A stretch of DNA of 64,000 nucleotides from Pseudomonas aeruginosa PAO1 (GTDB lineage: Bacteria; Pseudomonadota; Gammaproteobacteria; Pseudomonadales; Pseudomonadaceae): assembly GCF_000006765.1 (NCBI RefSeq), contig NC_002516.2; one strand, 5' to 3'. A model generated the notes under the pieces. That model was not told where the DNA came from and searched no databases. It worked only from the letters and a program-made list of their open reading frames with translations. Each line of letters starts with the position of its first letter. The stretch's first letter is position 1. The position numbers and the translations under genes were made by a program. Shown piece by piece: positions 5,012-45,004 of this stretch.

Positions 5012-7720
5012 ATGAACGGCATCCCACCCCTGTCTTCCCGCGACGCCCATGCCAGCCCGCCGCAACGGGTGCTGGAACGATTGCACAGCTCCGCCGCCGG
5101 TCTGGACGCGGACGAAGCCGCCCGCCGCCTGGCGGCGCACGGCTACAACCGATTGCCCGCGCCGAAACGCCAGGGGCCGCTGCTGCGCTTGCTGCGGCAG
5201 TTCCACAACGTCCTGCTGTACATGATGCTGTTCGCCTCGCTGGTCACCGCGCTGCTCGGCTTCTGGGTGGACAGTGCGGTAATCCTCCTGGCGGTGGTGG
5301 TCAACGCGCTGATCGGTTTCGTCCAGGAGGGCAAGGCGGCCAACGCGCTGGACGCCATCCGCGACATGCTTTCGCTGCATGCCCTGGTCCTGCGCGACGG
5401 CCAGCGCCAGGCGCTGGACGCCGAACGCCTGGTACCGGGCGACGTGGTGCTGCTGGCCTCCGGCGACCGGGTGCCGGCCGACCTGCGGCTGTTCGAAACG
5501 AAGAACTTCCATGTCGACGAGTCGGCCCTGACCGGCGAGTCGGTGCCGGTGGAGAAGGGCTGCGTCGCGGTGGCCATCGACGCGCTGCTCGGCGACCGCC
5601 GTTGCATGGCCTATTCCGGCACCCTGGTGACCAGCGGCCAGGCGCGCGGAGTGGTGGTCGCCACCGCCGGGGATACCGAACTGGGCCGGATCGGTACGCT
5701 GTTGCGCGAAGTCCGCACCCTGGCCACTCCGCTGCTGCGACAGATCGCCAGCTTCAGTCGCTGGCTGGCCCTGGCGATCCTGCTGCTGGCCGGCGCCACT
5801 TTCGTCCTCGGCACCCTCTGGCAGGGCCAGCCGATGGTGGACATGTTCATGCTGGTGGTGGCGCTGACCGCCTCGGCGATTCCCGAGGGACTGCCGGCGA
5901 TCATGACGGTGATCCTCGCCCTCGGCGTACAGCGCATGGCCCGGCGCAACGCCATCGTCAGCCGCCTGCCGGCGGTGGAGACGCTGGGTTCGGTGACGGT
6001 GATCTGCTCGGACAAGACCGGCACCCTGACCCGCAACGAGATGACCGTGCAGCGTATCGTCACCGCCGACCAGGTAATCGAGGTCAGCGGCGCCGGTTAC
6101 GCCCCCCTGGGTGGTTTCAGCCACAACGGCGAAGGCCTCGATCCCGCCGGACGCGACGATCTGCAGGAGATCGGTCGCGCGGCGCTGTTGTGCAACGAGG
6201 CGCGCCTGCACCAGGAGGGCGAGGCATGGCAACTGGAGGGCGACCCCACCGAAGGCGCGCTGCTCAGCCTCGGCCTCAAGCTGGGCCTCGATCCGCAGGC
6301 GCTGGCGGCGGAACGGCCACGCAGCGATGCGATTCCGTTCGAGTCCGAGCATCGCTTCATGGCCACCCTGCACCACGACCACGCAGGCCAGGCGATGGTC
6401 TACCTGAAGGGCGCGCCGGAGCGCATCCTCGACATGTGCGAGGCTGAACGGGTGGGCGACTCGGTGCGGCCGCTGGACCCGGACTACTGGCGGCGCCTGG
6501 CCACCGACACCGCCGCTCGCGGTCTGCGCCTGCTGGCCATCGCCCGACGGGCGATGCCGGCGGAGCAGCGCACGCTGGATTTCGCCGACGTGGAACATGG
6601 CTTCACCCTGCTGGCCCTGGTGGGCATCATCGACCCTCCGCGCGAGGAAGCCGTGGCCGCGGTCGCCGAATGCCAGGCGGCGGGTATCGCGGTGAAGATG
6701 ATCACCGGCGACCACGTCGACACCGCGCGGGCGATCGGCGCCATGCTCGGGATCGGCATCGACCGGCCGGCGCTGACCGGCGCGGAGATCGAGTTGCTCG
6801 ACGACCAGCGCCTGCGCGAAGTGCTGCCGGGCGTCGATGTGTTCGCCCGCGCCAGCCCTGAGCACAAGCTGCGCCTGGTGCAGGCCCTGCAGGCCAGCGG
6901 CGAGGTGGTGGCGATGACCGGCGACGGGGTCAACGATGCGCCGGCGCTGAAGCGCGCCGACGTCGGCGTAGCGATGGGCAACAAGGGCACCGAGGCGGCC
7001 AAGGAGGCGGCTGAGGTGGTCCTCGCCGACGACAATTTCGCCACCATCGCCAATGCCGTGCGCGAGGGAAGGGCAGTCTACGACAACCTGAAGAAATTCA
7101 TCCTCTTCATGCTGCCGACCAACGGTGGCGAGGCGCTGATCGTGATCGCCGCGATCCTGTTCCAGTTGACCCTGCCGATGACGCCGGCGCAGATCCTCTG
7201 GATCAACATGGTCACCTCCAGCACCCTGGGCCTGGCGCTGGCCTTCGATCCGGCCGAGCGCGGCCTGATGCAGCGTCCGCCGCGTCCGCCGGCGGAGCCC
7301 CTGTTGTCGCTGTTCTTCGTCTGGCGGGTGCTGCTGGTCTCGCTGCTGATGATGGCGGGCGCCCTGGGCCTGTTCCTCTGGGAGCTGGAGCATGGCACCG
7401 GGCTGGAGAGCGCGCGGACCATGGCGGTGAACAGCGTGGTGGTGTGCGAGATGTTCTACCTGCTCAACAGCCGGCATATCTACGATTCGGTGCTCAGCCG
7501 CGAGGGCCTGTTCGGCAACCGCCAGGTCTTGCTGGCGATCGCCGCCTGCGTGATGCTGCAACTGCTCTATACCTATGCGCCGCCGTTGCAGGCGCTGTTC
7601 GGCTCGGTCGGCCTGGCCCCGGGCGAGTGGGCGCGGGTGCTGCTGGCCGGGCTCGGCCTGTTCTGCGTCGCCGAACTGGAAAAGTGGCTATGTCGCCGGG
7701 TCCGTGCCCGGCAGGCCTGA
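5012..7720 (+). CDS. Cation-transporting P-type ATPase (P2, Ca2+-ATPase-like)
   Basis: TGES actuator motif, IPEGLP, phosphorylation motif CSDKTGTLT, KGAPE, MITGD and TGDGVNDAPAL. Confidence 0.95.
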   Translation: MNGIPPLSSRDAHASPPQRVLERLHSSAAGLDADEAARRLAAHGYNRLPAPKRQGPLLRLLRQFHNVLLYMMLFASLVTALLGFWVDSAVILLAVVVNALIGFVQEGKAANALDAIRDMLSLHALVLRDGQRQALDAERLVPGDVVLLASGDRVPADLRLFETKNFHVDESALTGESVPVEKGCVAVAIDALLGDRRCMAYSGTLVTSGQARGVVVATAGDTELGRIGTLLREVRTLATPLLRQIASFSRWLALAILLLAGATFVLGTLWQGQPMVDMFMLVVALTASAIPEGLPAIMTVILALGVQRMARRNAIVSRLPAVETLGSVTVICSDKTGTLTRNEMTVQRIVTADQVIEVSGAGYAPLGGFSHNGEGLDPAGRDDLQEIGRAALLCNEARLHQEGEAWQLEGDPTEGALLSLGLKLGLDPQALAAERPRSDAIPFESEHRFMATLHHDHAGQAMVYLKGAPERILDMCEAERVGDSVRPLDPDYWRRLATDTAARGLRLLAIARRAMPAEQRTLDFADVEHGFTLLALVGIIDPPREEAVAAVAECQAAGIAVKMITGDHVDTARAIGAMLGIGIDRPALTGAEIELLDDQRLREVLPGVDVFARASPEHKLRLVQALQASGEVVAMTGDGVNDAPALKRADVGVAMGNKGTEAAKEAAEVVLADDNFATIANAVREGRAVYDNLKKFILFMLPTNGGEALIVIAAILFQLTLPMTPAQILWINMVTSSTLGLALAFDPAERGLMQRPPRPPAEPLLSLFFVWRVLLVSLLMMAGALGLFLWELEHGTGLESARTMAVNSVVVCEMFYLLNSRHIYDSVLSREGLFGNRQVLLAIAACVMLQLLYTYAPPLQALFGSVGLAPGEWARVLLAGLGLFCVAELEKWLCRRVRARQA

Positions 7721-22551: not shown

Positions 22552-23523
22552 ATGGCCGTGCAAGATCTGCTTTCCCAGGATGAAATCGACGCGCTGTTGC
22601 ACGGCGTCGACGATGGCCTGGTGGAAACCGAAGTCGAGGCGACGCCGGGATCGGTCAAGTCCTATGACCTGACCAGCCAGGACCGCATCGTCCGGGGCCG
22701 CATGCCGACCCTGGAGATGATCAACGAGCGTTTCGCCCGCTACACCCGCATCAGCATGTTCAACCTGCTGCGCCGTTCGGCCGACGTCGCGGTCGGCGGC
22801 GTGCAGGTGATGAAGTTCGGCGAGTACGTGCACTCGCTGTACGTTCCCACCAGCCTCAACCTGGTGAAGATGAAGCCGCTGCGCGGCACCGCGCTGTTCA
22901 TCCTCGACGCCAAGCTGGTGTTCAAGCTGGTGGACAACTTCTTCGGCGGCGACGGCCGCCACGCCAAGATCGAGGGCCGCGAGTTCACCCCGACCGAACT
23001 GCGGGTGGTGCGGATGGTGCTGGAGCAGGCCTTCGTCGATCTGAAGGAAGCCTGGCAGGCGGTGCTGGAGATGAACTTCGAGTACGTCAACTCGGAGGTC
23101 AACCCGGCCATGGCCAACATCGTCAGTCCCAGCGAGGTGGTGGTGGTCTCCACCTTCCACATCGAACTGGACGGCGGTGGCGGCGACCTGCACATCACCA
23201 TGCCCTACTCGATGATCGAGCCGATCCGCGAGATGCTCGACGCCGGTTTCCAGTCCGACCACGACGACCAGGACGAGCGCTGGATCAAGGCCCTGCGCGA
23301 GGACGTGCTGGACGTCCAGGTACCGCTCGGCGCCACCGTGGTCCGCCGCCAGCTCAAGCTGCGCGACATCCTGCACATGCAGCCGGGCGACGTGATCCCG
23401 GTGGAGATGCCGGAACACATGGTGATGCGCGCCAACGGCGTGCCCGCCTTCAAGGTCAAGCTGGGCGCCCACAAGGGCAACCTGGCGCTACAGATTCTCG
23501 AAGCGGTCGAGCGCTCGCGCTGA
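22552..23523 (+). CDS. fliM: Motor switch protein FliM
   Basis: N-terminal LSQDEIDALL CheY-binding peptide and RIVRGRMPTLEMINERFAR. Confidence 0.97.
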   Translation: MAVQDLLSQDEIDALLHGVDDGLVETEVEATPGSVKSYDLTSQDRIVRGRMPTLEMINERFARYTRISMFNLLRRSADVAVGGVQVMKFGEYVHSLYVPTSLNLVKMKPLRGTALFILDAKLVFKLVDNFFGGDGRHAKIEGREFTPTELRVVRMVLEQAFVDLKEAWQAVLEMNFEYVNSEVNPAMANIVSPSEVVVVSTFHIELDGGGGDLHITMPYSMIEPIREMLDAGFQSDHDDQDERWIKALREDVLDVQVPLGATVVRRQLKLRDILHMQPGDVIPVEMPEHMVMRANGVPAFKVKLGAHKGNLALQILEAVERSR

Positions 23524-23550: not shown

Positions 23551-24024
23551 ATGGCAGACGAAGAAAAAGTGACCACCGAGGAACAGGCACTGGCCGACGA
23601 GTGGGCGGCGGCGCTGGCCGAGGCGGGCGACGCCAGCCAGGACGACATCGATGCGCTGATGGCCCAGGGCGGCGCGACTCCCGTGGCGGAGCCGAGTACC
23701 CCGCGGGCGCCGATGGAAGAGTTCGGCGCTTCGCCGAAGGCACCGACCATTTCCGGCCTGGAGGGGCCCAACCTGGATGTGATCCTGGACATCCCGGTGA
23801 CCATTTCCATGGAGGTCGGGCATACCGACATCAGCATCCGCAACCTGCTGCAGCTCAACCAGGGGTCGGTGATCGAACTCGATCGCCTGGCCGGCGAGCC
23901 GCTGGACGTACTGGTCAACGGCACCCTGATCGCCCACGGCGAGGTGGTGGTAGTGAACGAGAAGTTCGGCATCCGCCTGACCGACGTGATCAGTCCCAGC
24001 GAACGCATCAAGAAGCTGCGCTGA
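23551..24024 (+). CDS. fliN: Motor switch protein FliN
   Basis: ILDIPVTISMEVG...GEVVVVNEKFGIRLT SpoA domain. Confidence 0.97.
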   Translation: MADEEKVTTEEQALADEWAAALAEAGDASQDDIDALMAQGGATPVAEPSTPRAPMEEFGASPKAPTISGLEGPNLDVILDIPVTISMEVGHTDISIRNLLQLNQGSVIELDRLAGEPLDVLVNGTLIAHGEVVVVNEKFGIRLTDVISPSERIKKLR

Positions 24025-33955: not shown

Positions 33956-34798
33956 ATGAAGCAGATGGGTAGCATGCATCCCGTACAGGTGATCGCAGTA
34001 ACTGGCGGCAAGGGCGGCGTCGGCAAGACCAATGTGTCGGTGAACCTGGCACTGGCTCTGGCCGATCTCGGCCGTCGCGTCATGCTGCTGGATGCCGACC
34101 TCGGCCTGGCCAACGTCGACGTCCTGCTGGGACTCACGCCCAAGCGCACCCTGGCCGACGTGATCGAGGGACGCTGCGAACTGCGCGATGTCCTCCTCCT
34201 CGGTCCCGGTGGCGTGCGCATCGTTCCCGCGGCCTCCGGCACGCAGAGCATGGTGCACCTCTCGCCGATGCAGCATGCGGGGCTGATCCAGGCGTTCAGC
34301 GATATCAGCGACAACCTCGATGTCCTGGTCGTCGACACTGCCGCCGGGATCGGCGATTCGGTGGTCAGTTTCGTCCGCGCCGCGCAGGAGGTGCTGCTGG
34401 TCGTCTGCGACGAGCCGACCTCGATCACCGATGCCTACGCCCTGATCAAACTGCTCAACCGCGACCACGGCATGACCCGCTTCCGGGTCCTGGCCAACAT
34501 GGCCCACAGCCCGCAGGAAGGACGCAACCTGTTCGCCAAACTGACCAAGGTCACTGACCGTTTCCTCGACGTCGCACTACAGTATGTAGGTGTCATCCCT
34601 TACGACGAGTCGGTACGCAAGGCCGTGCAGAAACAGCGAGCCGTATACGAGGCATTCCCCCGCTCGAAGGCGTCCCTGGCCTTCAAGGCGGTCGCGCAGA
34701 AGGTCGATAGCTGGCCGCTGCCGGCCAACCCGCGCGGGCACCTGGAGTTCTTCGTCGAACGACTGGTCCAACACCCCGCGACAGGTTCGGCCGTATGA
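33956..34798 (+). CDS. fleN: Flagellar number regulator FleN (FlhG/MinD-like)
   Basis: Deviant Walker A GKGGVGKT, DADLGLANVD and EPTSITDAY. Confidence 0.97.
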   Translation: MKQMGSMHPVQVIAVTGGKGGVGKTNVSVNLALALADLGRRVMLLDADLGLANVDVLLGLTPKRTLADVIEGRCELRDVLLLGPGGVRIVPAASGTQSMVHLSPMQHAGLIQAFSDISDNLDVLVVDTAAGIGDSVVSFVRAAQEVLLVVCDEPTSITDAYALIKLLNRDHGMTRFRVLANMAHSPQEGRNLFAKLTKVTDRFLDVALQYVGVIPYDESVRKAVQKQRAVYEAFPRSKASLAFKAVAQKVDSWPLPANPRGHLEFFVERLVQHPATGSAV

Positions 34799-35538
34799 CA
34801 GCGGCCTCTGGAGTGCGTATGTATAGCAAGGCGCAAGCGCAGAACTCCCAGGAGCAACTGATCCAGCGTTACGCACCACTGGTCAAGCGCATCGCCTATC
34901 ACCTGCTCGGCCGCCTGCCGGCCAGCGTGCAGGTGGAGGACCTGATGCAGGCCGGCATGATCGGCCTGCTCGAGGCCGCGAAGAAATACGACGCCGGCAA
35001 GGGCGCCAGCTTCGAGACCTATGCCGGCATCCGCATCCGCGGGGCCATGCTCGACGAGGTCCGCAAGGGCGACTGGGCGCCGCGTTCGGTGCACCGCAAC
35101 ACGCGCATGGTGACCGACGCGATCCGCGCGATCGAGGCGAGAACCGGGCGCGACGCTAAAGATCACGAAGTTGCTGCCGAACTCCAATTGAGCCTCGAAG
35201 ATTACTACGGCATCCTCAGCGACACGCAGGGCAGCCGCCTGTACAGCTTCGACGACCTGTTGCAGGACGGCGAACATGGATTGCCGGAAGACACCAGCCT
35301 CAGTCACAACGAACCGATCCACGGCCTGCTCGACGAACGTTTCCAGGCGGCCCTGGCGGATGCCATCGCCAAGTTGCCGGAGCGCGAGCGCCTGGTGCTG
35401 GCGTTGTATTACGACGAGGAACTCAACCTCAAGGAGATCGGCGAGGTACTGGGCGTCAGCGAATCGCGGGTCAGCCAGTTGCACAGCCAGTGCGCCGCGC
35501 GTTTGCGCGCGCGCCTGGCCGATTGGCGGTCGGCCTGA
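34795..35538 (+). CDS. fliA: Sigma28 FliA
   Basis: [20 protein letters not shown] and a region 4 HTH ([17 protein letters not shown]). Confidence 0.98.
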
Positions 35539-35639: not shown

Positions 35640-36014
35640 ATGAAAATTCTCATCGTGGACGACTTTTCCACGATGAGACGCATCATCAAGAACCTCTTGC
35701 GGGACTTGGGCTTCACCAATACCGCCGAGGCCGACGACGGCACCACGGCGCTGCCGATGCTGCACAGCGGCAATTTCGACTTTCTCGTCACCGACTGGAA
35801 CATGCCGGGCATGACCGGCATCGATCTGCTGCGCGCGGTTCGCGCCGACGAGCGCCTCAAGCACCTGCCGGTGCTGATGGTCACCGCCGAGGCCAAGCGC
35901 GACCAGATCATCGAAGCGGCCCAGGCCGGGGTCAACGGCTATGTGGTCAAACCCTTCACCGCTCAGGTCCTGAAGGAAAAGATCGAGAAGATTTTCGAGC
36001 GGGTCAACGGCTGA
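35640..36014 (+). CDS. cheY: Chemotaxis response regulator CheY
   Basis: [24 protein letters not shown] and VKPF. Confidence 0.98.
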
Positions 36015-36033: not shown

Positions 36034-36822
36034 ATGGTGCTTGGTAACGATTCCACGGGCGACGAATTCGAATCGACCCTGAAAAAACATGCGCGCGAAC
36101 TGGTGGACTGTCTCGAACGGGGGCACTTCCAGCAGGCGGTGCAATTGATCCAGGAGCTCAGCCAGGCCAGGGACCGTGGCCTCTACCAGGAAGTGGGCAA
36201 GCTGACCCGCGAACTGCACAACGCCATCGTCGATTTCCAGATCGACCCGCATTCCCCCCACGCGCAGGAAATGTCGCAGATCGCCGATGCCACCGATCGT
36301 CTTTCCTACGTAGTGGAAATGACCGAGAAGGCCGCCAACCGGACCATGGACCTGGTGGAGCAGAGCGCCCCGCTGGTCAACCAGTTGGGCGACGATTCGC
36401 GGGAGCTGCACCAGGAGTGGCAACGCTTCATGCGCCGGGAAATCGACGCTGACGGCTTCCGCGAGCTGGCCAAGCGCATCGAACAGTTCCTCGTGCGCAG
36501 CGGCGAGAACGCCGGCCAGTTGTCCTCGCAGCTCAATGACATCCTGCTGGCGCAGGATTACCAGGACCTGACCGGCCAGGTGATCAAGCGTGTCACCAAG
36601 CTGGTCACCGAGGTCGAGAGCAACCTCGTGAAGCTGGTCTGGATGGCCGGCCAGGTGGACCGTTACGCCGGGATCGAGCACGACCACGTGAGCATGCGCC
36701 ACCAGGCCGCGCTGGAGCGTTCGGCCAAGGGCGAGGGGCCGCAGGTCGCCGCGGAAAAACGAGAGGATGTGGTGTCCGGGCAGGATGACGTGGACGATCT
36801 GCTGTCCAGCCTGGGTTTCTGA
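36034..36822 (+). CDS. cheZ: CheY phosphatase CheZ
   Basis: QDYQDLTGQVIKRV and a C-terminal QDDVDDLLSSLGF. Confidence 0.97.
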   Translation: MVLGNDSTGDEFESTLKKHARELVDCLERGHFQQAVQLIQELSQARDRGLYQEVGKLTRELHNAIVDFQIDPHSPHAQEMSQIADATDRLSYVVEMTEKAANRTMDLVEQSAPLVNQLGDDSRELHQEWQRFMRREIDADGFRELAKRIEQFLVRSGENAGQLSSQLNDILLAQDYQDLTGQVIKRVTKLVTEVESNLVKLVWMAGQVDRYAGIEHDHVSMRHQAALERSAKGEGPQVAAEKREDVVSGQDDVDDLLSSLGF

Positions 36823-37022: not shown

Positions 37023-39284
37023 ATGAGCTTCGACGCCGATGAAGAAATCCTCCAGGACTTCCTGGTTGAGGCCGGCGAGATTCTCGAGCAATTGTCCGAG
37101 CAACTGGTCGAGCTGGAGAGCCGGCCGGACGATATGGACCTGCTCAATGCCATTTTCCGTGGGTTCCATACGGTCAAGGGCGGTGCCGGCTTCCTCCAGC
37201 TGAACGCGCTGGTGGAATGCTGCCACATTGCGGAAAACGTCTTCGATATCCTGCGCAAGGGCGAGCGGCGCGTCAGCTCCGAACTGATGGATGTGGTGCT
37301 GCAGGCGCTGGATACGGTCAACGCGATGTTCGACCAGGTGCGCGAGCAGTCCGAACCGACCCCGGCGACGCCCGAGCTGCTGGCGGCCCTTGCCCGCCTG
37401 GCCGAGCCCGAGGGCGCCGAGCCCGCGGAACCTGTGCAAGCGCCGCCGGCGGCCGTTCCGCCAGCCGAGCCTGCGGCGCCGCCGGAAGCGCCCGCGCAGA
37501 GTGCCTCCAGCGATATCACCGACGACGAGTTCGAGCAGTTGCTGGATGCTCTGCAGGGCGACGAAGCGCCGGCCTCCGCCGTTGCAGAAGCGCCCGCGGC
37601 TCCCGCTGGCGACGAGATCAGCGACGCCGAGTTCGAGGCGTTGCTCGACCAGTTGCACGGCAAGGGCAAGTTCGTCCCGCCGGCGGTCTCGGCCGAGCCT
37701 GCGCAAGTCCCCGCCGAGGCGGTCGAGCCGGCCGCGGCTGCCGCTGGTGACGATATCAGCGACGACGAGTTCGAGGCACTGCTCGACGAACTGCACGGCA
37801 AGGGCAAGTTCGGCGATGTCCCGGAAGCCGCCGGCACACCCGCCGCACCGGCTGCCGCGGCTCCAGCGGCTGCGCCGGCGGAGCAGGGCAAGGCGCCGGC
37901 CGCCGCGGGCGGCGATGAGATCAGCGACGACGAGTTCGAGTCGCTGCTCGACGAACTGCACGGCAAGGGCAAGTTCAACGGCGCCTCCGAGGCCGTGGCG
38001 GCCGCCGCGGCGGTAGCCAAGAACATCGCGGCGAAGAGTCCCGCGGCGAAACCGGTCGCTCCGGCCAAGGCCGCCGCCGCGCGTCCGGCGGCGCCCGACA
38101 GGCCGGCGGCGAGCGAGGCGGAGACCACCGTGCGGGTGGATACGGCGCGTCTCGACGAGATCATGAACATGGTCGGCGAGCTGGTGCTGGTGCGTAACCG
38201 CCTGGTGCGCCTGGGCCTGAACAGTGGCGACGAGGCCATGGCCAAGGCCGTGGCCAACCTCGACGTGGTCACCGGCGACCTGCAGATGTCGGTGATGAAG
38301 ACCCGCATGCAGCCGATCAAGAAGGTCTTCGGCCGCTTCCCGCGCCTGGTTCGCGACCTGGCGCGGAACATGAAGAAAGAGATCAACCTGGAGCTGGTGG
38401 GCGAAGAGACCGACCTCGACAAGAACCTGGTCGAGGCCCTCGCCGATCCGCTGGTGCACCTGGTGCGCAACGCCGTCGACCACGGCATCGAGAGTCCGGA
38501 GGAGCGCGAGGCCGCCGGCAAGCCGCGGGTCGGCCAGGTGGTGCTGTCAGCGGAGCAGGAGGGTGACCACATCCTCCTGATGATCACCGACGACGGCAAG
38601 GGCATGGACGCCGAGGTGCTGCGCAACAAGGCGGTGGAGAAGGGCCTGCTGGAGCGCGATGCGGCGGACCGCCTGACCGACCTGGAGTGCTACAACCTGA
38701 TTTTCGCCCCGGGTTTCTCGACCAAGACCGAGATTTCCGACGTGTCCGGCCGCGGTGTCGGCATGGACGTGGTGAAGACCAAGATTTCCCAGCTCAACGG
38801 CACGGTCAACGTGTTTTCGCAGAAGGGGTCCGGCTCGAAGATCGTCATCAAGGTGCCGCTGACTTTGGCGATCATGCCTACCCTTATGGTGATGCTGGGC
38901 AGCCAGGCGTTCGCCTTCCCGCTGGTCAACGTCAACGAAATCTTCCATCTTGACCTGTCGCGCACCAATGTCGTGGATGGCCAGGAAGTGGTGATCGTCC
39001 GCGACAAGGCCTTGCCGCTGTTCTATCTCAAGCGCTGGCTGGTGCCGAGTGCGGCCCACGAAGAGCAGGGTGAGGGACACGTGGTGATCCTGTCGGTCGG
39101 CACCCAGCGCATCGGTTTCGTCGTCGACCAGTTGGTGGGACAAGAAGAAGTGGTGATCAAGCCACTCGGCAAGATGTTGCAGGGCACCCCCGGCATGGCG
39201 GGCGCCACCATCACCGGGGACGGGCGCATCGCCCTGATCCTCGATGTGCCGAGCATGCTCAAGCGTTACGCACGGCGCATCTGA
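37023..39284 (+). CDS. cheA: Chemotaxis histidine kinase CheA
   Basis: HPt domain FRGFHTVKGGAG, HATPase (NAVDHGIE, DDGKG, GRGVGMDVV) and a C-terminal CheW domain. Confidence 0.98.
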   Translation: MSFDADEEILQDFLVEAGEILEQLSEQLVELESRPDDMDLLNAIFRGFHTVKGGAGFLQLNALVECCHIAENVFDILRKGERRVSSELMDVVLQALDTVNAMFDQVREQSEPTPATPELLAALARLAEPEGAEPAEPVQAPPAAVPPAEPAAPPEAPAQSASSDITDDEFEQLLDALQGDEAPASAVAEAPAAPAGDEISDAEFEALLDQLHGKGKFVPPAVSAEPAQVPAEAVEPAAAAAGDDISDDEFEALLDELHGKGKFGDVPEAAGTPAAPAAAAPAAAPAEQGKAPAAAGGDEISDDEFESLLDELHGKGKFNGASEAVAAAAAVAKNIAAKSPAAKPVAPAKAAAARPAAPDRPAASEAETTVRVDTARLDEIMNMVGELVLVRNRLVRLGLNSGDEAMAKAVANLDVVTGDLQMSVMKTRMQPIKKVFGRFPRLVRDLARNMKKEINLELVGEETDLDKNLVEALADPLVHLVRNAVDHGIESPEEREAAGKPRVGQVVLSAEQEGDHILLMITDDGKGMDAEVLRNKAVEKGLLERDAADRLTDLECYNLIFAPGFSTKTEISDVSGRGVGMDVVKTKISQLNGTVNVFSQKGSGSKIVIKVPLTLAIMPTLMVMLGSQAFAFPLVNVNEIFHLDLSRTNVVDGQEVVIVRDKALPLFYLKRWLVPSAAHEEQGEGHVVILSVGTQRIGFVVDQLVGQEEVVIKPLGKMLQGTPGMAGATITGDGRIALILDVPSMLKRYARRI
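37512..37976 (+). repeat. Four intragenic repeats in CheA, consensus D(E/D)ISDDEFEALLDELHGKGKF
   Basis: Copies at 37512-37559 (partial), 37611-37673, 37749-37811 and 37914-37976, separated by Ala/Pro linkers. They are also similar at the nucleotide level. Confidence 0.95.
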
Positions 39285-42270: not shown

Positions 42271-43059
42271 ATGAAAGTCTGGGCAGTCGCCAATCAGAAA
42301 GGAGGGGTCGGCAAGACCACCTCGTCCATCGCCCTGGCCGGCCTGTTGGCGGATGCCGGCAAGCGCGTGGTCGTGGTCGACCTGGACCCCCACGGCTCGA
42401 TGACCAGCTATTTCGGCTATGACCCGGACACCCTCGAGCACAGCGCCTTCGACCTGTTCCTGCACCAGGGCAACGTCCCCGAGGGGCTGCCGGCCTCGCT
42501 GCTGCGCAGCACCAGCAACGAACGCATTTCCCTGCTGCCGTCGAGTACCGCGCTGGCCACCCTGGAGCGCCAGTCGCCGGGCAAGAGCGGTCTCGGCCTG
42601 GTGGTCTCGAAGAGCCTGGCGCAGCTCTGGCAGGATTTCGACCATGCGATCATCGACAGCCCGCCGCTGCTCGGCGTGCTGATGGTCAACGCCCTGGCCG
42701 CCAGCCAGCACCTGGTGATCCCGGTGCAGACCGAGTTCCTCGCGGTGAAAGGGCTGGAGCGGATGGTCAACACCCTGGCGATGATCAACCGGTCGCGCAA
42801 ACAGGCGTTGCCCTATACCATCGTACCTACGCTGTTCGACCGGCGGACCCAGGCTTCGCTGAGCACGCTGCGGATTCTCAACGAGAACTACCCGGACAAC
42901 CTGTGGCAGGCGTTCATTCCCATCGATACCCGCCTGCGCGATGCCAGCCGGGCCGGGGTCACGCCGTCGCAGCACGACGGCAAGAGTCGCGGGGTGATCG
43001 CCTACCGCGCCTTGCTCAAGCATCTGCTGGCGCAGCAGCCGGCCACCCGGGTGGCCTGA
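42271..43059 (+). CDS. parC: ParA-family ATPase for chemotaxis array partitioning
   Basis: ANQKGGVGKTT, DLDPHGS and IIDSPP, located within the che cluster. Confidence 0.88.
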   Translation: MKVWAVANQKGGVGKTTSSIALAGLLADAGKRVVVVDLDPHGSMTSYFGYDPDTLEHSAFDLFLHQGNVPEGLPASLLRSTSNERISLLPSSTALATLERQSPGKSGLGLVVSKSLAQLWQDFDHAIIDSPPLLGVLMVNALAASQHLVIPVQTEFLAVKGLERMVNTLAMINRSRKQALPYTIVPTLFDRRTQASLSTLRILNENYPDNLWQAFIPIDTRLRDASRAGVTPSQHDGKSRGVIAYRALLKHLLAQQPATRVA

Positions 43060-43150: not shown

Positions 43151-44041
43151 ATGAGCGCCGCCACCGCCACCCGTTCGCAACTGGCCTTGCAGTCCTACCT
43201 GGATGCGTTGCTCCAGGAGGCCACTTTCGAGGACCTGGAACCTCTCGTCGAGACGCCGCCAGCGCCTGCGCCCGCGCCGTTGAAGCCTGTCGCGCTGGCG
43301 GTCGCCGAAGTGGCGACACCGGCCCCGGCGCTGGAAACGCTGCCGGTCGACCACGGGTTCGACGAGTTCGAGGCCGCGGTGCTCGAGGAGCAGGTCCGCG
43401 ATGCGCGCCTGGTTCCGCCGGCGCCGGCGGCCCTGCTCGACGAACCGACGACGTTGCGCGAGCTGCCGGTCGAGCCACGGCCCCACGAAGTCATCGAGTT
43501 GCGCGTGCCGAGCGCCCCGGCGAGCGTCGGCGAGCCGCCGCTGCTCGACCTGCCGCTGCTCGACGACGGTCGTCCGGCCTGGGCGGCGGAGCCCTTCGAG
43601 TGCCTGCTGTTCGACGTCGCCGGGCTGACCCTGGCGGTGCCGCTGGTGTGCCTCGGCTCGATCTATCCGCTGGAGAACCAGGAACTGACCCCGTTGTTCG
43701 GCCAGCCCGACTGGTTCCTCGGCATCCTGCCGTCGCAGGCGGGCAACCTGAAGGTGTTGGACACCGCACGCTGGGTGATGCCCGAACGCTACCGCGACGA
43801 CTATCGCGACGGCCTCAAGTACGTGATCTCGGTCCAGGGCTACGAGTGGGGGCTGGCGGTGCACCAGGTGAGCCGCTCGATCCGCCTCGACCCGGCCGAG
43901 GTGAAATGGCGCAGCCAGCGTAGCCAGCGCCCCTGGCTGGCCGGCACGGTCATCGAACACATGTGTGCGCTGCTGGATGTGGCGGCGCTCGCCGAACTGA
44001 TCGCCAGCGGCGCCGTCAAGCGCCTGCACGGCGACCATTGA
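43151..44041 (+). CDS. parP: CheW-like (AIF) domain protein ParP
   Basis: Acidic Pro-rich N-terminus and a C-terminal CheW-like domain (FECLLFDVAGLTLAVPL...WFLGI), directly after the ParA-like gene. Confidence 0.85.
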   Translation: MSAATATRSQLALQSYLDALLQEATFEDLEPLVETPPAPAPAPLKPVALAVAEVATPAPALETLPVDHGFDEFEAAVLEEQVRDARLVPPAPAALLDEPTTLRELPVEPRPHEVIELRVPSAPASVGEPPLLDLPLLDDGRPAWAAEPFECLLFDVAGLTLAVPLVCLGSIYPLENQELTPLFGQPDWFLGILPSQAGNLKVLDTARWVMPERYRDDYRDGLKYVISVQGYEWGLAVHQVSRSIRLDPAEVKWRSQRSQRPWLAGTVIEHMCALLDVAALAELIASGAVKRLHGDH

Positions 44042-44596: not shown

Positions 44597-45004
44597 ATGG
44601 AGGTCGTCGCGCTGGCACTGGCGCTCGCCGCCTGCCTCGGCCTGGCGGCGGCGTGCCTGTGGCTGCGCCGTGAATTGCGCCGCCTGCAAGCTGCGCTGGC
44701 GCAGCAGGCGGAGGAGGGCGCCGCGCGCGAGCGCCGGCTCAAGGAGCTGAGCAAGCGCATCGAGTCCTACCAGCAGGTCAACGTGCGCATGGGCGAGGCC
44801 TTGCAGGACCTCGGCAAGCAACTCGCGCCGCTTCCCGACCGGGTCGCGCGCCTGGAGCAGCGCGATCCGACCACGCTGTCGTTCAGCCAGGCCGCACGCC
44901 TGGTCGGGCTCGGCGCCAGCGCCGAAGACCTGACCCAGGCCTGCGGTCTGTCGCAGGCCGAGGCCGAGCTGGTGGCGCGCCTGCACGAAGCCAAGGGCAA
45001 GTGA
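44597..45004 (+). CDS. DUF2802-like protein (TM, coiled coil, C-terminal HTH-like segment)
   Basis: AARLVGLGASAEDLTQACGLSQAEAELVARL, in the typical position after cheW. Confidence 0.8.
   Translation: MEVVALALALAACLGLAAACLWLRRELRRLQAALAQQAEEGAARERRLKELSKRIESYQQVNVRMGEALQDLGKQLAPLPDRVARLEQRDPTTLSFSQAARLVGLGASAEDLTQACGLSQAEAELVARLHEAKGK

Follow-up and report, generated by a model that had tools for sequence, protein, structure and literature searches.

Acidic helical repeats in the P1–P3 linker of Pseudomonas aeruginosa CheA: probable docking motifs for ParP that also persist in lineages without parP

In Vibrio, the localisation and inheritance domain (LID) of the chemotaxis kinase CheA binds the AIF domain of ParP, and in V. 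cholerae the binding of CheA is lost when ParP carries W305A (Alvarado et al. 2017, PMC5706961). The LID is reported to be sufficient for ParP binding by Ringgaard et al. 2014, as cited in Alvarado 2017 and in a recent preprint (10.1101/2025.10.27.684771). The same preprint describes three repeats of DEITDAEFESLLDQLHGKG, with the core EFExLLD, in P. putida CheA. These repeats overlap the LID of V. parahaemolyticus CheA, the region sufficient for ParP binding, and recurrently touch ParP residues 253–274 in AlphaFold 3 models. They are stated to be exclusive to organisms having ParC/ParP (10.1101/2025.10.27.684771), and the exclusivity of the LID and the repeats is repeated in reviews. In P. aeruginosa, two-hybrid assays with the full-length proteins have shown that ParP and ParC each interact with CheA, and normal CheA foci require ParP. 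Here, we examine the CheA encoded in a 64,000-nt stretch of P. aeruginosa PAO1 (assembly GCF_000006765.1, contig NC_002516.2), hereafter the window, which carries four copies of such a repeat in the linker between its P1 and P3 domains.

The cheA gene (37023..39284, plus strand) encodes an F6-class chemotaxis histidine kinase of the P. aeruginosa PA1458 type, as assigned from its open reading frame and Pfam content. Translation of 37023–39281 (plus strand) yields a protein of 753 aa, identical to NCBI proteins named P. aeruginosa CheA, with Pfam matches to Hpt (residues 8–100), H-kinase_dim (368–427), HATPase_c and CheW. The repeat region (residues 164–318, nt 37512–37976) lies between Hpt and H-kinase_dim, and consists of DITDDEFEQLLDALQG followed by three copies of D(E/D)ISD(A/D)EFE(A/S)LLD(Q/E)LHGKGKF, with Ala/Pro-rich spacers between them. 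The repeat unit is 22 residues long, with the consensus GDDISDDEFEALLDELHGKGKF, and is present in one degenerate and three near-identical copies. Repeat 1 (DITDDEFEQLLDALQG, 37512..37559, residues 164–179) is the degenerate copy and lacks the HGKGKF tail. It is followed on the same plus strand by repeat 2 (GDEISDAEFEALLDQLHGKGKF, 37608..37673, residues 196–217), repeat 3 (GDDISDDEFEALLDELHGKGKF, 37746..37811, residues 242–263) and repeat 4 (GDEISDDEFESLLDELHGKGKF, 37911..37976, residues 297–318). All four are internal to CheA, none being placed at a free terminus.

An AlphaFold2 model of CheA, built on an alignment of 17 orthologous sequences, predicts four helices of 11–12 residues that coincide with the repeats (residues 167–178, 201–211, 247–258 and 302–313). 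They form islands with a predicted local distance difference test (pLDDT) score of ~53–79, the blocks of repeats 2 and 4 reaching ~79 and ~77, respectively. The surrounding P1–P3 linker (37419..38138, plus strand, residues 133–372) is rich in Ala, Pro and Glu and is predicted to be disordered, with pLDDT <50 outside the repeats. The original prediction of four acidic helical repeats on Ala/Pro linkers is thus borne out to the base by the translation, the coordinates and the modelled helices. Its claim that this region of CheA lacks a P2 domain also stands: P2 and CheY-binding Pfam models gave no match at E≤0.01 in the window CheA or in 16 orthologues, and nothing between P1 and P3 in the AlphaFold2 model of the window CheA has a globular alpha/beta fold. 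Helices that stand alone within a disordered segment, as modelled here, are typical of docking motifs.

Residues E, F, E, LL, D, L and G are invariant across all four CheA copies, and the EFExLLD core is present in more than one of them. The copies are 76–80% identical in DNA, with start-to-start spacings of 102, 138 and 165 nt. As protein copies 2–4 nevertheless differ pairwise at just 2–3 of 22 residues, each copy is maintained by selection on the protein. A profile of the four copies, run against the nearest complete genome (G001), gave significant matches to these CheA copies alone (E 6e-14 to 1e-12), and the next-best match had an E value of 0.15. The four-copy pattern is therefore far beyond chance. 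The weaker matches in that genome (E 0.15–5), among them a 169-aa phage-like frame, appear unrelated. The repeat profile found no match in the Protein Data Bank at E≤10. Tandem Repeats Finder did not list the CheA repeats, whose spacers are of unequal length, but another repeat search did.

The number of copies varies within the species, as had been suspected from the window alone. Allele lengths were taken from the best-scoring proteins among the matches listed, a survey that covers alleles of 753 aa and longer. The 753-aa CheA with four repeats is the dominant form in P. aeruginosa, with identical sequences on hundreds to more than 1000 contigs. Forms with five repeats, of 787, 799 and 808 aa, were retrieved from several independent assemblies, some of which carry the name P. 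aeruginosa at NCBI. The five-repeat proteins exceed the 753-aa form by 34, 46 and 55 aa, which matches the three distances from one repeat start to the next (102, 138 and 165 nt), as expected from unequal recombination between neighbouring copies. Four- and five-repeat alleles thus provide natural variants with which the importance of valency can be tested.

We consider it fairly probable that the repeats are short linear docking motifs for the AIF domain of ParP, which serve in the polar anchoring of CheA. Each repeat would form an amphipathic acidic helix, I-[ST]-D-D-E-F-E-x-L-L-D-x-L, capped by H-G-K-G-K-F, and the helices would be strung on the disordered P1–P3 linker of an F6-class CheA devoid of P2. 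They would represent the conserved core of the Vibrio LID, whose established partner is the CheW-like C-terminal domain of ParP. ParP in turn binds ParC and the polar landmark FimV/HubP, so that CheA would be held in the polar array through its repeats and handed on at division. With four copies per chain and eight per dimer, binding could gain in avidity, or one CheA could hold several ParP molecules. We infer both that the repeats themselves make the ParP contact and that binding is multivalent. Binding of ParP to the LID in Vibrio and to full-length CheA in P. aeruginosa is taken from the literature; the anatomy of the repeats, their conservation, their co-occurrence with ParP and their copy-number variation are observations of the present analysis.

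The genomic context agrees with ParP docking. The che I region of the window has the gene order fliA (34795–35538), cheY, cheZ (36034–36822), cheA, cheB, motC, motD, parC, parP, cheW and a DUF2802 gene. Downstream of cheA, at a distance of 3–4 kb, lie parC (42271..43059, plus strand; Pfam AAA_31, CbiA and ParA), which encodes a ParA-like ATPase and polar anchor for ParP, and parP (43151..44041, plus strand). ParP has 296 aa, with a C-terminal CheW-like (AIF) domain at residues 150–282 (PF01584, E 7e-15). Its Trp253 and Trp263, invariant in 26/26 ParPs, fall within the stretch that the preprint predicts to contact CheA. A polar-anchoring interface with ParC/ParP, which the original prediction had named as an alternative to a CheY dock, therefore agrees with the published reading of the same motif.

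The repeat profile was searched against 401 gammaproteobacterial genomes chosen to sample the class. The motif was found in 145 of them, each time in an open frame about as long as a CheA. At E≤1e-3, 13 genomes had one match, 76 had two, 52 had three and 4 had four. A phylum-wide sample gave 55 positive genomes, all of them Gammaproteobacteria. Among 80 named species whose sequence around CheA was fetched, three copies are the commonest state (63 species), followed by four (12) and two (4), and one species was scored as having a single copy, although inspection of that locus (L109) revealed two. Species with the motif include members of Pseudomonas, Marinobacter, Marinomonas, Pseudoalteromonas, Photobacterium and Thiodiazotropha. 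The 246 repeats of the 80 species gave the logo D-[ED]-I-[TS]-D-D-E-F-E-[AS]-L-L-D-[QE]-L-H-G-K-G-[KQ]-F, in which F, LL and D approach 100% and H and G reach ~90%; its core agrees with that of the four copies in the window.

ParP matches were retrieved in 108 of the 401 genomes, of which 105 also carry the motif. The three exceptions are accounted for: cheA runs into a contig end in two of them, and in the other a deletion has removed the che genes that separate fliA from the 3′ end of parP. We observed at one such locus (L028; G277:C16, ~6311–7493) that the last 78 codons of parP remain and adjoin fliA, the stretch from cheY to parC having apparently been lost. Every evaluable ParP-positive genome therefore has the motif, and among the 80 named species parC-parP was present at every locus that reaches the downstream genes, except in one metagenome-assembled genome (MAG). 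Occurrence of the motif wherever ParP exists fits its role as the handle of ParP.

Several points weigh against ParP as a complete explanation. The co-occurrence with ParP is confounded with that of the whole F6 cluster. By the preprint's own account, the CheA side of the modelled ParP interface is inconsistent between models (10.1101/2025.10.27.684771). Above all, the motif occurs without parP, in an otherwise conserved cluster, in at least 11 genomes of 7 lineages. Among the 401 sampled genomes, 40 are motif-positive without a ParP match. Since a single-sequence ParP search overlooks divergent ParPs, absence was judged by gene order and two profile searches. Divergent ParPs were indeed present in several of the 40 (G266, G329, G171, G338, G287, G196, G046 and G115), and the Pfam CheW model missed one out of five. 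The count is restricted to unambiguous cases, leaving aside genomes such as G048, G123 and G127, and the 28 remaining motif-positive, ParP-negative genomes are partly resolved.

The gene order that replaces parC-parP differs among the seven lineages. In lineage f31 (G031 and G347), parC is followed by cheW after 90 nt. In lineage f36, which comprises the complete genome of Thermithiobacillus tepidarius DSM 3134 (G217) and T. plumbiphilus (G036), motD is directly followed by cheW, and both parC and parP are missing. Lineage f10 (G010 and G201) has the order cheA-cheB-cheW. The order motD-cheW recurs in lineage f33 (G033 and G215) and in G003, a genome with four repeats whose sister genus (G196) retains parC-parP. 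In G135, parC precedes a 1-kb stretch without a frame on that strand. In a Pseudomonadales MAG (L109, JANQJO010000114.1), motD is followed by two ordinary cheW genes. A whole-genome search of ten of the ParP-less genomes with PF01584 retrieved just CheW, CheV, CheA-P5 and the CheW proteins of second chemotaxis systems, and a search of the f31/f36 genomes G031, G347, G214, G217 and G036 with a ParP-domain profile found no ParP either.

The motif is maintained in these lineages. Between G031 and G347, identity is 87% in the repeat cores, 55% in the rest of the linker and 94% in P3–P5; the corresponding values are 80, 33 and 87% between G217 and G036 and 80, 51 and 96% between G010 and G201. Both members of each of these pairs lack ParP. 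In the pair G135/G287, where G287 retains ParP, identities are 73, 33 and 80%. In the three fully ParP-less pairs (f31, f36 and f10), conservation of the motif is therefore comparable to that of the folded domains, which argues for a ParP-independent function. Docking to ParP cannot account for this conservation, and in most of the ParP-less lineages the function appears to be independent of ParC too. The published exclusivity, by which LID or repeats occur only with ParC/ParP, is contradicted by these lineages, and this is a new result; its converse holds, as ParP-positive genomes carry the motif. Docking to ParP is probably neither the sole nor the original job of the motif. Its being under selection in lineages without ParP implies a second partner within the core F6 machinery.

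The ParP-less loci showed further peculiarities. The C-terminal Phe of H-G-K-G-K-F is absent from all of the ~20 ParP-less repeats that we read (G031, G347, G217, G036, G010, G201, G003, G033, G135 and L109). It is present in 60% of the 246 repeats of ParP-bearing species, a figure uncorrected for phylogeny and drawn mostly from Pseudomonas, and some ParP-bearing taxa, such as Photobacterium, likewise lack it. The H-G-K-G-K-F tail might be the ParP-specific part of the motif. At the two f33 loci (L034 and L035; G033 and G215), no cheZ lies between cheY and cheA, parC and parP are missing and CheA has a single repeat; MotD is 573 aa long there, with a long Pro-rich C-terminal extension. The gap of ~1 kb between parC and cheW in G135 (L012; G135:C8, 4453–5516), which has no frame on the operon strand, possibly represents a decayed parP; the sister genome G287 encodes a 222-aa ParP at this place. 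The f31 loci (L008 and L009) keep parC without parP. This raises the question of the role of ParC there, perhaps by direct binding to CheA, given that a two-hybrid interaction between ParC and CheA has been reported in P. aeruginosa.

CheY is a candidate for the second partner. The repeats could form a multivalent peptide dock for CheY, and perhaps for the CheB receiver, that replaces P2, with ParP as a later, additional user; we regard this as possible but unlikely. Each helix would then bind the alpha4-beta5-alpha5 face of CheY, as the N-terminus of FliM does, and would raise the local concentration of CheY near P1. P2 was absent in all 17 repeat-bearing CheAs tested, and the repeats occupy the place of P2 in E. 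coli; however, E. coli CheA functions without P2, so that a dock is not obligatory. The motif is under purifying selection in ParP-less lineages, all of which retain cheY next to cheA. In the window, cheY (35640..36014, plus strand) encodes a 124-aa protein matching Pfam Response_reg. Circumstantial support comes from Ortega et al., who place Lys117 of F6 CheY on the FliM-binding helix and report its change to Glu/Asp, a reversal of charge, in CheYs recruited to P2-bearing F7 kinases. Lys117 would fit an acidic peptide partner, provided that the residue we assign to this position in the window CheY is the equivalent one.

The original prediction drew its case for CheY from peptides elsewhere in the window, and the sequences that it named at the FliM N-terminus, at the CheZ C-terminus and in FliN (ASQDDIDALM) are all present. 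Of these, the FliM N-terminus comes closer to the repeats than the CheZ C-terminus, which is a much weaker match. FliM (22552–23523) starts with MAVQDLLSQDEIDALLHGV, and its N-terminal peptide LLSQDEIDALLHG (22567..22605, plus strand) shares the pattern [IL]-S-x-D-E-(F/I)-(E/D)-A-L-L, at FliM residues 6–16, with the repeats. Scored against a matrix of 31 repeats, the N-terminal match LSQDEIDALLHGV was among the best non-self matches in the window, ranking 6–14 among ~105,000 six-frame positions according to which columns were scored. The CheZ C-terminal peptide GQDDVDDLLSSLGF (36778..36819, plus strand), at the end of the protein, ranked just ~320–390 of ~106,000–111,000 window positions, and the repeat profile retrieved neither peptide genome-wide, even at E≤10. 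The matrix ranking is, moreover, post hoc, and a binding element shaped as an acidic amphipathic helix with an LL pair is generic. Two observations from the same comparisons stand apart. The stretch STGDEFES at the N-terminus of CheZ (nt 36052) came fifth in the matrix scoring; other taxa do not conserve it, and it was rejected as a chance match. FliN (23551–24024, plus strand) carries a FliM-N-like sequence, DASQDDIDALMAQ, near its N-terminus (residues ~26–38); the two switch proteins FliM and FliN thus each have a candidate CheY-binding peptide.

The CheY-binding peptides also differ from the repeats in ways that bear on function. FliM-N and CheZ-C resemble the repeats as acidic amphipathic helices in which a hydrophobic residue, an acidic residue and any residue precede L-L, and FliM comes closest (S-x-D-E-I-D-A-L-L, compared with S-D-D-E-F-E-A-L-L in a CheA repeat). 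However, they are terminal and single, whereas the CheA repeats are internal and repeated, with an extended L-H-G-K-G-K-F tail. FliM- and CheZ-type peptides favour phospho-CheY, so that such a dock would hold on to the product and not, as P2 does, to the substrate. No paper proposing CheY binding by the EFExLLD motif was found in the literature. In its broadest form, the idea would make the repeats primarily a FliM-like CheY/CheB array that replaces P2 in all gammaproteobacterial F6 CheAs and that the CheW-derived ParP grasps secondarily. We think this unlikely; if true, it would explain both the presence of the motif in every ParP genome and its survival without ParP/ParC.

Alternatively, the repeats may bind CheW-like domains in general (CheW, CheV and ParP-AIF) and tether scarce CheA to a CheW-rich F6 baseplate, with ParP as one specialised partner. 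This would also explain why the motif is kept without ParP, and it gains from the fact that all ParP-less clusters keep cheW, with CheV encoded elsewhere, and from the ratio of ~50 CheW to 7.5 CheA reported for F6 arrays. ParP-AIF is a homologue of CheW, and at the column of the invariant ParP Trp263 (P-W-L-A-G) F6 CheW has Phe/Tyr (K-[FY]-I-Q-G); yet CheW offers no aromatic residue to match Trp253, and the Trp263 column is occupied by Gly in CheA-P5. The argument is purely inferential, we found no report of LID binding CheW, and we judge such general binding improbable.

It is highly improbable that the repeats instead recruit another protein, such as DipA/Pch, CheZ or the DUF2802 protein, or that they are an acidic spacer that tunes the mobility of P1. 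The localisation of DipA depends on CheA, with which it co-precipitates according to the literature, but DipA binding has not been mapped to the repeat region. CheZ fits poorly with the f33 clusters, which have no cheZ beside cheA yet keep one repeat. The near-invariance of F, LL, D, L and H-G over 246 repeats points to a specific interface and not to a spacer. For the DUF2802 protein, the argument is one of gene order, since its gene follows cheW in nearly all clusters, including most of the ParP-less ones.

We made three further observations on the genes downstream of cheA. The DUF2802 gene (44597–45004, plus strand, in the window) recurs in its place after cheW in nearly all F6 clusters examined, most of those without parC/parP among them, and its product is a candidate for a further array partner. 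The N-terminus of ParP (residues 10–25; 43151–43250, plus strand) contains LQSYLDxLLQ(D/E), conserved in Pseudomonas and related genera and presumably the ParC-binding element. Finally, DEFEAAVL in the linker of ParP (residue 70) resembles the repeat core, was found in just 8 of 75 ParPs and was dismissed as a chance match.

ParP docking is the best-supported mechanism. The conservation of the motif in ParP-less genomes is new and raises the odds of a second, core partner. For P. aeruginosa itself, the gain is largely one of annotation: the P1–P3 linker would be read as four docking motifs, not as a degenerate P2. The wider consequence lies in the discrepancy with the literature, given that Thermithiobacillus, which has neither ParC nor ParP, and several other lineages keep the motif. 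What had been assumed to be an interface with one partner becomes a testable question about two. The answer bears on how CheY is recruited by the P2-less F6 kinases, the ones that drive chemotactic behaviour in Pseudomonas, Vibrio and Shewanella.

Compared with known systems, the window CheA is closest to that of P. putida, with which it shares the genus, the position of the EFExLLD repeats between P1 and P3, the core motif, the HGKG tail and the downstream order parC-parP-cheW. P. putida CheA has three copies, whereas P. aeruginosa CheA has four, or five in rare alleles, and the exclusivity to ParC/ParP organisms stated in the preprint differs from our finding of the motif in at least seven lineages without parP. 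The LID of Vibrio CheA is likewise a region upstream of P3 in an F6 CheA that binds the AIF domain of ParP, and Photobacterium damselae (L107), of the Vibrionaceae, has three copies of the same motif in its CheA. In the accounts available to us, however, the LID was defined by deletion and two-hybrid mapping and not as repeated short helices, and one review places it after a P2 domain, which is not detectable in the window CheA. The P2 of E. coli and T. maritima CheA has the same chain position, with flexible linkers between P1 and P3, but it is a single globular alpha/beta domain, and the window CheA has neither such a fold nor a Pfam match to it. The ParP reading of the motif is thus already in the literature, to which P. 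aeruginosa CheA adds a four-copy member.

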